Shown here: positions 2,391 through 15,915 of the stretch, in pieces
How positions within the stretch are numbered: the first letter of the stretch is position 1
Layout: the number at the start of each line of letters is the position of its first letter
Assembly: GCA_002189035.1 (NCBI GenBank)
Contig: NEEC01000025.1
Span: 558,001-622,000, forward strand
From: Utricularia gibba
Lineage: Eukaryota; Plantae; Magnoliophyta
Direction: 5' to 3'
DNA: 64,000 nt
Notes under the pieces: generated by a model
Database searches by the model: none
What the model saw: the letters and a program-made list of their open reading frames with translations, nothing else
What the model was told of the DNA's origin: nothing
Made by a program: the position numbers and the translations under genes

Positions 2391-4388
2391 ATGGAAGTGG
2401 TGCCGAATGACTCCGACTCGGCAGCCGTCTTTCCGCCGTGGCAGGAGATGTTCCGATCTGCGTCCACGAGAAAGCCGGAGGGCGATCCTGCGACGTCGCA
2501 ATCGCAGGAGAATTGCGATGACAAACAAAGCTCTTTCTCCAGTGATCCTCAGGTACGCCTCGCTCTTTACATAGCTATGGCGCACGCTGGTTTGGCTTTC
2601 GCGATATTTGTTCTCTATGGAGTTTGTAAGATTCTGGAGAACTTTATGCGACCCATTTTGTGGGCTGTGCTCTGTTCAATCCCATTGAGAGGGATTCAAG
2701 AGACCCTTGTGGAGTTCTGGTCTGAGCCCTTGAATCTAGGGCTCACTGAAACCATTCTGGCTGTCCCTGTGGCCATTTTCCGGGTTTTCATTGGAACTCT
2801 TGTGGAAATCAAAGAAGCCATACTCAGATTTGTTCTTAGGAAGAAGAAGGCTACTCTTCAGAGGAAGAAAAAGAGTGGATTCCACAAATTGCTGAGATGG
2901 TTAGTCTCTTTTTCTTTGTTTGTCTTTGCTTATGAGCATATCGGTACGATTGGGTCCATTTCACTTCTACTCTTGGGGTTCATGTTCACCGCTACGGGCG
3001 TAGAATCCACCATGAGTAAGGTTTCTTCATTGAGGAGCAACAGTTTCCGCAGGGTTCCATGGAGCTCCTTCTTCACAAGGGGTATACTGAAAAGATTGAA
3101 AACTTTTGTAGCTACTGGATTGATTGTTGTGATGATCATCGGATCACTGGTTGGCATGATCTTCTTTTCTTATAAGATCGGTATGGAGGGGAAAAACACT
3201 GTCATTGCACTGAAATCCCATTTAGAAGAAAGCAACTATCATGAGATGATAGGGGTTAAGCAATGGATAGAAGAAAATGATGTCCCTTCAATGGTAGATA
3301 CCTACTCTAGCAAGCTTTATGAAACAATTGCTGAGCAGATTGATACCTTGGCTTTGCAATACAATTTGACAGAATTTGTTACCGGGATCAAACAGTTTGT
3401 TGTAACTCCTTCAGGGGACTCCAGCTCCAGGTCTACTACGGTGGTGAACCCTTCTTCCCCTTTCGCTGAAAAGATGTTGCGCCTCAAGGATCGAGTCAAG
3501 GAGCGTGAATGGGGGCAGATATATGCAGAAATTGATGCTATTTTTCGTGAGGTGGTGATCAGTAGAGAGGATTTGGTTGAGAAGGCAAAAGGGTTTGCTT
3601 CTCAAGGCGTTAATGTATTACAAAGTATATTAGTGAGTGGTACATCGATTCTAGGAGGCAGCGCTAGGCTCACATTCGTCATCGGAAAGTCGATTCTCTC
3701 TGGTGCTGCGGAAATATTCAACTTCCTTTCACAATCGATGGTGTTCTTTTGGGTTCTATACTATCTGATCACCTCTGAATCAGGAGGGGTCACAGAACAA
3801 GTAATGTGTATGCTTCCCATCTCCGAATCATCTCGAACACGATGCGTACAAGTCCTCGACAATGCTATCTCTGGCGTCCTTCTGGCTACAGCTGAGATCG
3901 CTTTGTTCCAGGGATGCATCACTTTGCTTTTATTCAGACTCTTTTCCATACACTTCCTCTACATGTCTACTGTGCTAGCATTCCTTAGACCTCTGCTTCC
4001 TCTGTTCCCACCATTGGTTTCAACAATTCCAGCAGCTGTTCAACTGCTGCTTGAGGGCAGGTACTTGGTCGCAATTGGGCTGTCTATCATTCATCTTGGC
4101 TTGATGGACTATGGAGCGTGGGAAATACAAGAAGATATACCTGGTTACAGTGCTTACCTTACAGGCCTCAGCATCATAGGTGGAATGACTCTGTTCTCCT
4201 CTGCTTTCGAGGTTATCTCCTCTCCTCTTTCTTCCATGCTCACATCAAAGTCCATATTCTAGAAATTACAAGTATGGTGTTTTGCGCAGGGGGCAATCAT
4301 GGGGCCATTGATAACAACTGTGGTGATTGTTCTCAAGGACTTGTATGCGGAGTTCTTAATGAAAGTATCCAATGATGACAAACAGTGA
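2391..4388 (+). CDS. Transmembrane protein 245-like (AI-2E/PerM-like) polytopic membrane protein (exons 2391-4211, 4290-4388; ~639 aa)
   Basis: 607-codon first exon with many hydrophobic segments (WQEMFRSAS...[16 protein letters not shown]). A GT/AG intron joins it in frame to [22 protein letters not shown]...*. Confidence 0.85.
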
Positions 4389-8748: not shown

Positions 8749-10028
8749 ATGTCGGCCTTCATCGGAAAATACGCTGGTGCGTTGTGGGTTCCTTGCTCTG
8801 TTTTGTATCCCTTGTGATGTTGGTTTTTAGAAGGGAAGTGATTTTGTAGCGTGCCGTTTCTTTGTTTGCATGTATGTAACCAAAATAAGCTTTTTTTTGT
8901 GTGGTTGATTCAGATGAGCTCATCAAGACGGCGAAGTACATCGCCACTCCCGGCAAGGGGATACTCGCCGCCGATGAGAGCACAGGAACCATCGGAAAGC
9001 GGCTGGCAAGCATCAACGTTGAGAACGTGGAAACCAACCGCCGCGCCCTGCGCCAGCTCCTGTTCACCTCGCCATCGGCGCACAACTATCTGTCCGGTGT
9101 CATCCTGTTCGAGGAAACGCTGTACCAATCAACGGCCGACGGCAAGCCCTTCGTCGAGATCCTCCAGGAAAACGGCGTCGTTCCAGGCATCAAGGTTGAC
9201 AAGGGAACGATCGAGCTCGCCGGCACAAACGCCGAGACCACCACCCAAGGCTTTGATTCTCTAGGCGCGCGTTGCGCGCAGTACTACAAGGCCGGCGCCC
9301 GATTCGCCAAGTGGCGGGCTGTCTTGAAAATCGGGGCCAGCGAGCCGTCGGAGCTTGCGATACAGCAGAATGCTCAGGGGCTGGCGCGCTATGCCATCAT
9401 CTGTCAGGAGAACGGCCTCGTTCCCATCGTGGAGCCCGAGATTCTAACCGACGGTGGGCACGATATCAAGAAATGCGCCGCCGTGACGGAGACTGTGCTG
9501 GCGGCGGTCTACAAGGCGCTGAATGATCACAAGGTGCTTCTTGAAGGAACCCTTTTGAAGCCCAACATGGTTACCCCTGGCTCCGACAGCCCGAAGGTAA
9601 TAACAACGTAATCTTTAAGTCCAATTTCCCCGTCCTTCTGTCCTAATATAACACCCAAACAGGTTGCCCCGGAAGTGATTGCGGAGTACACAGTGGCGGC
9701 GCTGCGGCGCACCGTGCCACCAGCCGTGCCGGGAATAGTGTTTCTGTCAGGTGGGCAGAGCGAGGAAGAGGCGACGGTGAATCTCAACGCCATGAACAAG
9801 CTGGAGGTGCTGAAGCCATGGACCCTGACTTTCTCCTTCGGCCGCGCTCTGCAGCAGAGTACTCTGAAAACATGGGGTGGGAAGCCTGAAAATGTGGACA
9901 AGGCGCAAGCGGCGTTCTTGGTCAGGTGCAAGGCCAATTCAGAGGCCACCCTTGGAAAGTACGGCGGCGCTGGCTCCGGCAACGATTTGGCTTCTGAGAG
10001 TCTGTATGAGAAGGGGTACAAGTATTGA
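8749..10028 (+). CDS. FBA: Fructose-bisphosphate aldolase, cytosolic class I (exons 8749-8776, 8914-9596, 9663-10028)
   Basis: MSAFIGKYA|[31 protein letters not shown]...LKPNMVTPG...[12 protein letters not shown]...GYKY*; no transit peptide; canonical splice sites. Confidence 0.97.
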
Positions 10029-10371
10029 TCGATCCCCACCTTGCCGTGGGACATGGTGGCCTCTTCTACTACATTGTATTATACTTTCAGCTTTCTGAAG
10101 CATCCATCTCCATTCCTCCTTACAAACCAAAAAGATGTTCCGACAGTTTTACTAATCTTCTACCCTGTAAAAAGGTCGTCATAATTTTTCATGTACAAGA
10201 CTATGGTTCGTAATTGTTCAGTCACCTTTGTCAGAATTGGAAACACACAGATGAAAAACAGTATCAGAAAGAGGCTGGGGGGGCAGGAAAACCTTATTCC
10301 CACTCATCAGCTCACATGGGGCAGAGCATTTTCAAGTGAAAAGCGTCATCCTCATAAGAATCACCAATCAA

Positions 10372-10695
10372 TCAGCTGTTGCTTCGAGCGCAGTACGTGA
10401 TCTTGATATATCCCCAGCTGTAAGGATTGGGGTTGATGGGAGTCGCCGTTGTAATAAGATCTTCCTGTACGGCTGCAAGGAACACTGTCTCTGCCCAGTG
10501 CACCGTATCCGATGTAATCCCCCGATTGTGCGAGCATCCGGTGGCTTACATCCGTCGGCATGATCGCGTCGGAGTCGTCACCGATGAGACACCATGGAAA
10601 AGGGCGGCTACATGGTGATCCAACGGTGAAGACGATGCAGCATTGGATAAAAGGCACACAGTTGGGAAGGATATAGCGATCAGAACAAGATTCAT
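10372..10695 (-). pseudogene. RALF (rapid alkalinization factor)-like peptide pseudogene
   Basis: ATG at 10695 opens a signal-peptide-like MNLVLIAISFPTVCLLSNAASSS. A second frame gives CLIGDDSDAIMPTDVSHRMLAQSGDYIGYGALGRDSVPCSRTGRSYYNG and a third gives NPYSWGYIKITYCARSNS*. Two frameshifts; two of four conserved Cys replaced. Confidence 0.85.
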
Positions 10696-11019
10696 GCTGC
10701 GAAATGGAGAACGGATGAACGCCCAAGGAACAGGAGGAGAAACTTAAAAGGGTGTTGGCGCAGTGAATGGAGGAAGAGCGCAAGGTGGGTAACAGAAGAG
10801 CGGTAGAAACTCCATGATTTCTCCAAATTGGTTCTATTTCTCATTTTTCATCAAGTACCAAGCACACTGCTTTCCAATAGTTTGTGTTGGGAAAGACTTG
10901 AACCAATTTCAAGCCTAATTTTTAAACTTATGACTGATACCTCCCAACAAAGCAAGTTATTTGACAGACTACGGAGGAGCAACTGAAACGATTGACTAGT
11001 AACCATCATCAGCCAGCTT

Positions 11020-11600
11020 TGCATCACATTACTTCTTGCTCCTCTGCAGTTGCTTGAATATGCTCGCGGCGCCGCAGAACAAGTTACCAGAGATGGTGAA
11101 ATTTTTGAAATTGGGCAAGGTACTATCCCACCAATCGTGTCTCGAGCTAACAATCCCCAGGTTGGGGCATCGGTCCTGGAGAAGGAAGCAGGAGACACAG
11201 CAGGGTGTAAAGGCAGTACAAATCTGTTGTTGCTGAGATGAAGCACATAGAGGAGAGGAAGGATTTATGAAGTCTGCGCGAGAATTCCACACAAACGGTT
11301 GCTATTGAAATGAGGCAATACAACGCCAGAAGACCTGATTCATCCATCAGGAAAAAACTTTGCCTGCTATTTCATCATCAACAGAAACGACTTCATCCCC
11401 TGTTTCATTCAGAAGTGGAATGCAAGAGATTCCGTTGTATTCATAAACACTTGGGCCGTTCCAGTTGGAAGTGAAGTTGCTTGGATCAGATTATGTCACT
11501 CTTTTCCAAGCTTGAAGAGCTGCACAGGGTTGCTTCAGGATAGAATCTGTCACATTCTTGGAAAACAGTGTGATGGTGGTGCTTCCCTGCAACTTTGAGA
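11020..11600 (-). pseudogene. Leucine-rich repeat extensin (LRX)-type LRR-domain pseudogene
   Basis: Minus-strand fragments read ALQAWKRVT*SDPSNFTSNWNGPSVYEYNGISC, VVSVDDEIAG, ESGLLAL, HFNSNRLCG, LHLSNNRFV and NFKNFTISGNLF. They match the LRX N-terminal/LRR consensus in collinear order, with in-frame stops, deletions and frame changes. Confidence 0.8.
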
Positions 11601-11910: not shown

Positions 11911-12435
11911 CTACCTTTTTCTTTTCCCCACCAAGCCGTGGGTGGCCCCTGCGCCATGAACATGCTGAAGAACATCAGAAGCCCCTGGGACGCCATAAAT
12001 ATGTCCGGGTTCATGATAATCCATAACGTTACCACCATAAATACCTGCCCCAATGACGGCGGCTCCCCCCTCTTCACTACCGCCGGAAGAAATCTTCTCC
12101 CCCTCCATCTCCCTGTATTTCCCCAAGTAAACCTTCAAGGGCTCAACGTACTCATCAAAGCCAAGAGTCATCATAGCCCAGAGCAAATCATCGCCATTAA
12201 CAGTCTTCCGCTTCTCCCTCTGACACTTGTCGGAAGCTTCCCCAGTAACAAAACTGATAAACTCAGATACACACTCCTGCACCGTTTCCTTAGCGTCCTT
12301 GGAGATCTTCGCGTTCGCCGGGAGACCCTTCTTCATGATCCTGCCAACGTTGGCAATCGGCAAGAACCGATCTTGCTCTCTGTTTCCGGCGCTACTGTTG
12401 CCGTACCCTCCTGAATCGTTCTCCGAATCCACCAT
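11911..12435 (-). CDS. NF-YB: Nuclear factor Y subunit B (HAP3/NF-YB), intronless, 174 aa
   Basis: [70 protein letters not shown] histone-fold core; ATG at 12435 (MVDSEND). Confidence 0.96.
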
Positions 12436-12866
12436 TTTTTCCCCACAAGCAAAAGCGGCTAGATTCTTTTTCACCCCGACTGCGCTTCTTTGGTTCTTCT
12501 GTATCAAATCACAGCGCAATAATGGATTCGGGATGACCTTAACAACTTCACCTTCGCGTTGACAAACGGAGGAGATAGCGACCAAGAAGATATGCATACG
12601 TGGTGAACTTATTGTCCGCTAATTTTCCAATCGTGGGCCAGCCGCCACCGCCAGCCCAAGCCCACACATTAGGCCCATTTGTCAACCCAGACTTTTATTC
12701 AATTTCTAAGCTCTCAATAAATGATTTGATTCAAGTAGCTAACCTGCGCCTGCAGGCCACGGAGGCAACACCAAAAAAAGAAAAAAACACACTGTCGCGA
12801 CAACATATTATTCCGGGAGGACATCCGTCAGTCGTCATCATCCTGAAACCGCTAGCTCATCGGAGA

Positions 12867-13690
12867 TCAGCCGCCACCGCCGGATCCGTATTTCTTGCCG
12901 AAAACTATGACCTGCAATTTGTCATAGCCTGCGAGCACACCGGCACCAGCAACTGCTCTCAGAATGTTGGCTCCGGCACCCTTGAAGAGGGACTTGGGCC
13001 CCTCCTTTTGTACGATCTGGTTGAAGGCATCGATGGAGCTCTTGTACTTGACAGCCTCTCCGGAGGTCATCATCATTCTTCTGCGAACGGTGTCGATGGG
13101 GTAGGAGGCCAATCCCGCACCAATGGTGATACCCCAACCCAGCAAGAAACTTGCCAAGAAGTTGTCCTGGTCCAAATGAAGAAACATAATGCAATAAACT
13201 GCATTTCGACTCTGAACAAGGTTGGGTTGAGAAGAAAATTACTGACCTGCAATTCACCGGTCAAGATGACTGGTTTGAGGGAATCGTACATGCCGAAGTA
13301 GAGGCCACGGTAAACAATAATCCCAACACAGGAGATGTTGAATCCACGATAAAGTCCAGCAACGCCGTCTGATGCAATGGTTTTTCTATAGACGTCAACC
13401 AGGCCATTGAACTGTCGTTCACCACCCTTCTTCGCGGCCTTGGCATCATTTGCCAACCTTGTTCGGGCGTAATCAAGGGAGTACACAAACAATAGAGAAG
13501 AAGCACCAGCGAGGCCACCAGATGCCAAGTTCCCAGCAAACCACTTCCAGTATCCATCTTTGTCTTTCTTGAAGTTAAACATCCTCTTAAAGTAATCCTT
13601 GAAAGCAAAGTTCAGGGCCTACATATGCACACAGTGTTGGCGTTAGAGAAATTTCCAGTTGTGAAGAACCCTAGCTGTATCTGATGAACA

Positions 13691-13721
<31 letters not shown>

Positions 13722-14211
13722 CTACCTGGGTGGGAAAGTATCTGATAACATTGGCTGTGTTACCCCTCCAGAGAGAGATCACCCCTTCATCCTTTATAGT
13801 TCTTCCAAAGCAATCAGAAATGCCCTTGTAAGGTTCAGAGAGACGACCGGCTCTGATCATCTCATCTTGGTTTTGAATCAAGAGCTTAACTCTTTCGATT
13901 GGGGCAGCAGCAGTTTTGGAGACAGCTGCGGAAACTCCCCCCATCAAGAAATCCACCATAAAACTTGAAAAACCTTTCCCCTTTTCCATTGGAGCGTGTA
14001 CAAGAATTGGCGAGATAGGTGAATACACTTCATTCCCCGTAACAAGAGAGGAAGGGAAGGAAATGCTACGAAGCCCTCCATTGGCATATCCGGCACTCAG
14101 ATAAGCGAAGCTTGAGTTGCCAGACTGCACATGAGAAGAAGTCCGAGATAACAGAAATGATTGGCCATATAACTTCTGACTGACCGACGGATATCGCACA
14201 CTATCCTCCAT
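12867..14211 (-). CDS. AAC3: Mitochondrial ADP/ATP carrier, AAC3-like (exons 14211-13726, 13618-13247, 13166-12867)
   Basis: [39 protein letters not shown]|ALNFAFKD and the RRRMMM signature. The N-terminal extension ([16 protein letters not shown]) resembles AAC3. All exon lengths are multiples of 3. Confidence 0.93.
13692..13721. repeat. (GT)n(AT)n compound microsatellite in AAC intron
   Basis: gtgtgtgtgtgtgtatatatatatatatat read directly. Confidence 0.9.
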
Positions 14212-15915
14212 GCTCACCGGGAATTCAGTGACCTTTGATGGAATAAAACGAGTCAGCAATAGCATCCAAAGAACATCTCAAACAAAATCTTCCAGGCTAA
14301 AATAAAAGATCATCTTCACAAACAATTTAGAAGGCATGAATATCTAATACAGCTGAAACGCAGGGTGGAAAACAGAAAAAAGACTTGTCTTTTTGACGGG
14401 TCAATACAACTCATTCCCGAAAATGCGACCGATCGATCATATTTTCATGAGCGTTGTTGCATAGAATGAACCGCGCCACGAAGGCAGACACTCATAACAG
14501 GGACACATTGCTAACTAGAAACGTCAAACACTCCAGATCCAAGAACACATTTTTTTTCAGTGCCGGCCCGAACATTATCATTTTAGCATCACCGGCATTA
14601 GATCTGATGAAAGTGATGAAAAAATAAAGAAGCAAAATCTGTGATTCCAGCACCAGCGCATCCAGCTGTTCACAAAAAAAAAATGAAAACCATCCCCCAC
14701 TAATCCACACATATTTCTCGAAAATCAATGAAACCCAAGTCTAATCAATGACCCCGCAACGAAGAACACAACGAAACGAAGAGACCAATCAGTGTAACGA
14801 TGCAGGTGCAGCATCGGCTTTACCTATAGAAGGTCGCGAGCGAAGGCAGCGTAGCCCCCAAATGGGCGAAAATTGTCAATATATACTGAGGACCGTGCAC
14901 TAGGGCTTCCGTTTTTTACGGATATTCGCCCTCGGACTTGGGGAAAATTTCCATTGTGCCACGAAAACGGCTTTTTGTTTTTGTAGGATCCCCTCCCCTG
15001 CGTGGTGGGTTTGAATTTGGTATTTTGTGCAGGATATTATCCATAAGCCCGTTTACCTATGAGCCCGGCTCATGCATCTTATCGTTAAGCCCATCCCTCC
15101 TCGGAGTTCAGGGGCCCGCCCTATCCCTTTCTGGGTGGCTGCTGTCGTGGACAGTTTTTTGTGGCTGCCTGAGCTCTCGCAATCAATCAATCAATGGTGC
15201 TGAGCTGATGTTGCGCGTCTGAGAGCGTCATTACTTGGGCCGTGGCGCTGGGCCTCATGAAACCAACAGAGTGACAGAGCACGGCGAGCCCATGGCCGTG
15301 GTGGAACCGGATGAGCAAGGCGACTCACAAACCTGGACCAGGGAGGGGTGTCATCGGATAGGAATTAGGATAGATACAGAGCTTTGGACCAGGCTCTGTC
15401 ACTGCTCATTCGACTGCTCCGACAAGAATTCCGGGTGGCATTATCCTCGGGTCCAACACACATCTCAATTTCGTAGAAATCGTCTGCGGGATCCCAAAAA
15501 CCAGGGTTGAGTTGGATGGAGCGAGTAGTGGTGAGCGCAACCGCAGAAGCAGCAGCCAGCAGGGCGATTGCCAAGTACGATGTACGAGGCGGCAACGGAT
15601 TCCCTTCCTCGCGACTTGAATAATAAATGAAGGGAAAGGGGTGAAGTGAAGTGAAGGTACGAGTACGACCTCATCACCAAAGCAAAGCAAAGCAAAGCAG
15701 CTCTCCCCACCACCACATCTCCAGCCCCACCCCAACAGCACCATTTACTCCTCTCGTCGTACCCTGACCTAAACCCCAATAAATTCCACCCCTCCACGTT
15801 TCGATCCTTGGTTCGCCGCCCTGACGCCCCCTCCCCGAGGGAGGGAGGGAGGGAATACGCCGGAGGGAGGGGAGTTCCTCGGCCTCGTTGGTGGAATGCC
15901 CCACCGTAAAAACCA

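Follow-up and report, generated by a model that had tools for sequence, protein, structure and literature searches.

Adjacent LRX-like and RALF pseudogenes as the probable relics of a tandem gene pair inherited within Lamiales

The window, by which we mean the whole 64-kb stretch of DNA that was analysed, carries on its minus strand an SBP-box gene, an ADP/ATP-carrier gene (AAC), an NF-YB gene, an LRR relic and a RALF relic, in this order, followed by an aldolase gene on the plus strand. The LRX-like LRR pseudogene lies at 10999..11559 (-), as located by tblastn with 10 orthologs, and the RALF pseudogene at 10372..10695 (-), as identified by Pfam PF05498 and a match to RALF4 in the PDB. Between them is a minus-strand spacer of 303 bp (10696..10998), measured from the end of the LRR homology at 10999 to the start codon of RALF at 10695. 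The upstream syntenic anchor is an intact NF-YB3-like gene at 11911..12435 (-), within an ORF of 11911-12597 (PF00808, E 3e-27), and the second anchor is the AAC gene, a mitochondrial carrier (PF00153), at 12830..14265 (-). An intact class-I fructose-bisphosphate aldolase gene (PF00274) at 8901..10028 (+) is convergent with the RALF relic; its two exons were searched each alone, not joined, and the gene is complete across two ORFs, which cover PF00274 profile positions 1-229 and 235-349. The initial annotation, which had described LRX-type LRR and RALF remnants in minus-strand tandem, about 0.3 kb apart, between intact aldolase and NF-YB genes, was borne out in all these points by the Pfam, PDB and tblastn searches.

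At 303 bp, the spacer between the two relics is shorter than its counterparts in Phtheirospermum (0.9 kb), Rehmannia (1.8-2.3 kb) and Phlomoides (9 kb). The window holds about one gene per 5 kb, and the spacers near the relics measure only 0.2-0.4 kb; since the window is gene-dense throughout, the short spacer alone is no proof of promoter deletion. From this gene density, together with the long branches of the window sequences compared with other Lamiales, the source looks like a compact, fast-evolving Lamiales genome. Besides the SBP-box gene, the window contains a PEP carboxylase gene, an F-box gene, a DUF688 gene and a trehalose-phosphate synthase gene, and a 623-aa ORF (2391-4262, (+)) with an AI-2E_transport match below threshold (31.1 bits against a cut-off of 34.3).

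The RALF relic was recognised through a 140-aa ORF (10361-10783, (-)) that matches PF05498 with an E of 1.3e-11 and 45.7 bits, against a cut-off of 22 and the 88-101 bits scored by intact RALF orthologs. Its matches in the PDB are RALF4 chains only, and a word-index protein search with it returned no matches, the query being too decayed. A total of 11 intact RALFs align to the relic in two frames (10630-10433 and 10428-10378), and the signal-peptide ORF (10695-10546) stands in a third, with the signal peptide, the propeptide and N-terminal part of the mature peptide, and the C-terminal part thus spread over three reading frames. Two lesions break the frame: the loss of 2 bp near 10430, in the interval from the second to the third cysteine, and a further frameshift at about 10600-10640. 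Cys2 was changed from TGC to GGC (YYNC to YYNG) and Cys3 is gone (RGC to WGY), which leaves Cys1 and Cys4, two of the four conserved cysteines of a RALF. The RRxL cleavage site now reads HRML, and the one continuous ORF of a RALF, with signal peptide, RRxL and YISY, is no longer present. Nevertheless, YIGY (as in RALF4) and the YY loop are retained, and the relic has lineage motifs in common with the RALFs of the orthologous tandem pairs, namely SxRMLAQSG in the propeptide and ITYCAR-N- at the C-terminus. The sequence is unable to encode a RALF and is a relic rather than a functional member of the family.

The LRR relic is broken as well. Among 177,635 PDB sequences, a 47-aa piece of it (11350-11490, (-)) matches only LRX2 (E 2.6e-6) and LRX8 (E 1.7e-4), and each of the 10 intact orthologs gives three collinear tblastn pieces in two frames. 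The first piece corresponds to ortholog aa ~45-114 (11559-11362), the second, in another frame, to aa ~113-164 (11363-11208), and the third, a weak match, to aa ~313-372 (11121-10999). What is retained comprises the N-terminal cap with LRR1-3 and, further on, the final LRR with the beginning of the Cys-rich tail, so that the cap and LRR domain characteristic of LRX proteins can still be recognised. Only 86 nt stand in place of ~148 codons (ortholog aa ~165-312), a net deletion of ~360 bp. The relic also contains three in-frame stops, one of which stands where LRX8 has Tyr87, at least two frameshifts, a cap cysteine changed from C to Y and an in-frame deletion of ~4 codons, and its identity is ~50% at positions where the orthologs share 70-80%. 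Assembly error as the source of the lesions was rejected in view of the substitutional stops, the lost cysteines, the ~360-bp net deletion and the low identity.

The intact ortholog in Perilla is a 405-aa single-exon LRR protein encoded in a collinear block of AAC, NF-YB and the LRR gene. It aligns to LRX8 (E 1.5e-125) in a single stretch of 422 bits that takes in the LRX-specific Cys-rich tail; the Cys-rich hinge of LRX proteins is therefore present in the ortholog, and the corresponding match of the relic (aa 313-372) is weak. An origin of the relic in an LRR family other than LRX, for instance among receptor kinases, receptor-like proteins or PGIPs, could draw on the finding that the intact ortholog also matches GSO1, ERL2, PEPR1 and others. 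However, the kinases reach their scores as sums over several stretches, the cap piece of the relic matches only the two LRX proteins in the PDB, and the relic is syntenic with the LRX-like ortholog, so this origin is refuted and we give it almost no weight.

Across eudicots, 120 orthologs were compared, with lengths of 336-459 aa and a median of 404 aa. None of the 120 has three or more SPPP repeats and only two have a single one; the C-terminal extensin domain that defines LRX proteins is absent, and because the ortholog clade has no extensin domain we file the gene as LRX-like and not as LRX. The partner gene, which the initial annotation had called LRX-type, thus belongs to the LRX-type LRR family, as proposed, and not to the receptor kinases or PGIPs, although it is not a canonical LRX but a member of a conserved, extensin-less clade of ~400-aa proteins. 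Several Lamiales members of this clade end in a short Ser/Thr-Pro motif, e.g., STPPP or TSPP, which may be a vestige of the extensin motif.

The residues reported by Moussu et al. (PMC7132299) at the RALF4 and dimer interfaces of LRX8 were mapped onto the orthologs via the chain numbering, which was fixed by the 6TME monomer mutations. Almost all are kept in the 120 orthologs: H150 and E266 in every one, E313 and C157 in 118 each, F221 in 117, A133 in 119 and Y87 in 115, while F109 is Y or F in 120/120. The exception is Q314, found in only 84 of the 120. The kept contact residues speak well, if indirectly, for an ability of the extensin-less clade to bind RALFs, and the intact proteins of a pair could bind each other in the manner of LRX8 and RALF4.

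Relatives were entered through NF-YB protein matches in Lamiales, and the collinear loci were then examined. The window NF-YB shares 79-80% DNA identity with its counterparts in Perilla, Rehmannia and Phtheirospermum, which lie upstream of the LRX-like gene. In Perilla, Phtheirospermum and block 2 of Rehmannia, NF-YB is in turn preceded by Mito_carr genes, with which the window AAC gene is collinear. A tandem of an LRX-like gene followed by a RALF gene, in the same order and on the same strand, was found at four loci in three other species. Phtheirospermum japonicum (L015) carries AAC, NF-YB, the LRX-like gene (a 385-aa open frame) and RALF (a 113-aa open frame) with a spacing of 0.9 kb, whilst Rehmannia glutinosa carries NF-YB, the LRX-like gene, an intact RALF of 123 aa and a Cu_bind_like gene in two homeologous blocks (L010 and L014), with spacings of 1.8 and 2.3 kb. 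In Phlomoides rotata (Lamiaceae, L016), an LRX-like gene is followed on the same strand by RALF, both as open frames, at a spacing of 9 kb. As these relatives carry RALF beside the orthologous LRX-type gene, the window pair is the relic of an inherited tandem arrangement.

A chance juxtaposition of members of two large families, confined to this genome, was the alternative that the initial annotation had kept in view. A rough estimate from family sizes gives ~0.04 adjacent RALF/LRX pairs expected per genome, and a wide scan would accordingly yield some; yet the same pair with the same upstream anchors recurs at four loci in three other species, which refutes chance and leaves it hardly any probability. 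Phtheirospermum, Phlomoides and both Rehmannia homeologs thus provide the RALF genes next to LRX-type genes on which that annotation had made its proposal depend. Of the longer order it put forward for comparison, aldolase, RALF, LRX, NF-YB and AAC3, the part with AAC, NF-YB, the LRX-like gene and RALF recurs in relatives, while the aldolase does not and the tight linkage is not universal. No aldolase adjoins the RALF/LRX-like pair in any relative examined, and the aldolase junction is specific to the lineage of the window. No description of RALF/LRX gene adjacency was found in the literature searched.

Some features of these loci concern their annotation. The LRX-like frames of Rehmannia are each interrupted once in the assembly (L010:11352-11400 and L014:10911-10993), one in an N-terminal His/Thr run and the other near aa 310, and introns bridge both in the annotation; these breaks could be long-read indel or assembly errors, or the start of decay in a tetraploid. 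At L010:10001-14728 (CM071931.1), a single 453-aa gene model, P0129, carries via an intron both LRR and PF05498 domains, and this LRX-like/RALF fusion could be a prediction artefact or a reflection of read-through transcripts. In Phtheirospermum (L015:12059-12400), the RALF annotation begins at an internal Met and gives 64 aa, and the full ORF is 113 aa with a signal peptide. The top-scoring NF-YB database match, P0001 (393 aa), consists of three tandem copies of one NF-YB sequence and was set aside as probably an assembly or annotation artefact; it does not represent the NF-YB protein of the window.

The tandem arrangement is not found everywhere. In Perilla, Erythranthe and Sesamum alatum, the LRX-like gene is present, but neither a RALF gene nor a relic of one occurs within 10 kb of it. 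In Solanum pinnatisectum (L017), the best-matching RALF is followed by a Cu_bind_like gene, as in Rehmannia, and preceded by an LRR-malectin kinase gene, with no LRX-like gene within 10 kb upstream of this syntenic RALF. Because the Phlomoides pair is itself 9 kb apart, the 10-kb limit is no proof of absence in large genomes. Still, with RALF missing nearby in three Lamiales and the LRX-like gene missing in Solanum, tight linkage is not required, and the tight pair is a candidate ancestral state. On chromosome 13 of Erythranthe guttata (L006/L011, about 2.92 and 3.10 Mb), two near-identical NF-YB genes (K2P 0.014) lie ~185 kb apart, and the LRX-like gene follows 9 kb downstream of the second alone; this suggests a local duplication that may have displaced RALF. 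NF-YB loci examined in Erythranthe (13G030000) and Sesamum latifolium are non-syntenic or paralogous, with no AAC, LRR or RALF there.

Taken together, we consider it highly probable (about 85%) that neither member of the window pair is functional and that both descend from an ancestral tandem of two genes, the order of which was inherited and both members of which have lost constraint. The product of the upstream ancestor would have been a secreted, extensin-less LRR protein of the LRX family, ~400 aa long. Its downstream neighbour, read in the same direction, would have specified a canonical RALF propeptide, complete with signal peptide, RRxL site, YISY, YY loop and four cysteines. A common ancestor within Lamiales would have passed on the order AAC, NF-YB, LRX-like and RALF, and in this genome both genes would then have lost constraint, with the stops, frameshifts, cysteine losses and ~360-bp net deletion accumulating in them and the flanks staying intact. 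The pseudogenes are an ordinary double gene loss.

The phylogenetic analyses bear on the timing of this decay. In the DNA tree of the LRR part, the window has a terminal branch of 0.64, the others 0.0-0.24. Its RALF branch measures 0.45, compared with 0.0-0.21 for Lamiales and 0.41 for Solanum, whereas the intact NF-YB, at 0.25 versus 0-0.15, exceeds its relatives by much less. The two relics are both old and over-diverged to a similar degree, which fits a joint loss and fits separate losses equally, and as the estimates come from 210-350 sites the two losses are not separately datable. The LRR-part DNA tree groups the window relic with Sesamum alatum (97%). In a 27-taxon protein tree, for which the two reading-frame pieces of the LRR relic were joined with an X at each stop, the relic is placed next to the core-Lamiales families sampled, on a long branch of unresolved position (58%). 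The window sequences are about equally distant from all the sampled Lamiales families.

One route by which both genes might have been lost is fractionation after a whole-genome duplication, where the block would have been a redundant homeologous copy, each gene would have been lost independently and intact paralogs would persist elsewhere. The two homeologous copies of the whole block in Rehmannia, the extra NF-YB loci with neither AAC nor an LRX-like gene nearby in Erythranthe and Sesamum, and the gene density of the window, as in compact, heavily fractionated genomes, are in line with this route, which we regard as a tentative but serious possibility.

Another explanation, which takes up the proposal of a coupled and possibly co-regulated module in the initial annotation, is that a functional cassette was lost as a unit, the LRX-like protein having been the dedicated binder or secretion partner of the adjoining RALF, with selection keeping the linkage and the failure of one gene dooming the other. 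Several observations would agree with it: the tandem arrangement is conserved across Orobanchaceae and Lamiaceae, the RALF-contact residues are near-invariant in the extensin-less clade, and the excess divergence is of similar size in both relics. In the intact neighbouring RALFs, the YY loop and the four cysteines that LRX binding requires are all present, and the secretion of RALF4 by insect cells depended on co-expression of an LRX (PMC7132299). The linkage in a looser form may also be old. By locus tags, Erythranthe has a candidate pair (RALF 13G029600 and LRX-like 13G030400); Escallonia herrerae has another (RALF RJ639_028759 and LRX-like RJ639_028769) on one 0.98-Mb scaffold; and by published coordinates the candidate pair VvLRX10 (409 aa) and VvRALF8 of Vitis lies 63 kb apart. 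These tags and coordinates give a hint of an older, looser RALF/LRX-like linkage, and if it is real, the two genes would have shared a neighbourhood since early core eudicots and become immediate neighbours later in some Lamiales.

However, tight adjacency is broken in at least three Lamiales with an intact LRX-like gene, and in Solanum, and the divergence estimates cannot date the losses separately. Because AAC and NF-YB share the synteny of the LRX-like gene to the same degree, the linkage is explained by plain descent, and neutral synteny is enough; with loss of intervening genes, neutral synteny would likewise yield linkage that is first loose and then tight, AAC and NF-YB travelling with the LRX-like gene in the same way. 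The case for selection on the RALF/LRX-like linkage is weak, and the loss of a cassette as a unit appears unlikely. A putative ligand-partner module is plausible on structural grounds. A wider proposal, that the extensin-less clade would be soluble RALF binders or secretion partners, that the downstream RALF would be the cognate ligand, that the two would form a co-inherited cassette, perhaps loosely linked in core eudicots, and that their joint decay would reflect mutual dependence, seems quite improbable.

With the window pair read as relics of an inherited tandem, the value of the pseudogenes is as a pointer to a conserved tandem of RALF and an unstudied extensin-less LRX branch that keeps the residues of the RALF-binding pocket. 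If the neighbours bind, the order of the genes would point to a candidate ligand of a clade without known function, and would provide a natural soluble LRX for the study of RALF/LRX cell-wall signalling. Binding between the neighbours is directly testable with the co-secretion and ITC assays used on LRX8-RALF4 (PMC7132299).

Among the known systems, the closest are the Arabidopsis LRX8/LRX2-RALF4 complexes (PDB 6QWN, 6TME and 6QXP; Moussu et al. 2020, PMC7132299). The intact orthologs share with them the sequence of the LRX LRR fold, the Cys-rich tail, the dimer cysteine and the RALF4-contact residues, and the neighbouring RALFs share YISY, the YY loop and the four cysteines. They differ in that the orthologs of the relic have no extensin domain, so that no covalent wall anchor is expected, and in that their pairing with a RALF is predicted from sequence. 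To our knowledge, the LRX and RALF partner genes of Arabidopsis are not adjacent. We take the upstream ancestor gene to be of the same kind as At4g28380 of Arabidopsis, which presumably adjoins AAC3 (At4g28390), as the LRR relic is near an AAC gene. Like At4g28380, which is annotated as an LRR family protein (PMC3289092), and the short VvLRX members of 394-426 aa (PMC11606049), the orthologs of the relic are ~390-410 aa long, encoded by a single exon, and composed of an LRX-type LRR and a Cys-rich tail. No function or ligand of At4g28380 or the extensin-less clade was found described in the literature searched.

The architecture of the natural extensin-less clade is the same as that of the engineered LRX1 and LRX4 without the extensin domain (LRX-deltaE; Herger et al. 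2020, PMC7357788). LRX-deltaE is soluble and retains its binding partners; however, it is artificial and dominant-negative in plants, whereas the natural clade could be a sink, a chaperone or a signalling partner. The SCR/SP11-SRK pair of the Brassica S-locus is a genetically linked plant ligand-receptor pair in which selection on matched alleles maintains the linkage. While matched alleles are under selection there and the window pair is known from gene order and sequence, both place the gene of a secreted cysteine-rich peptide beside that of an extracellular LRR or receptor partner, a putative one in the window pair.
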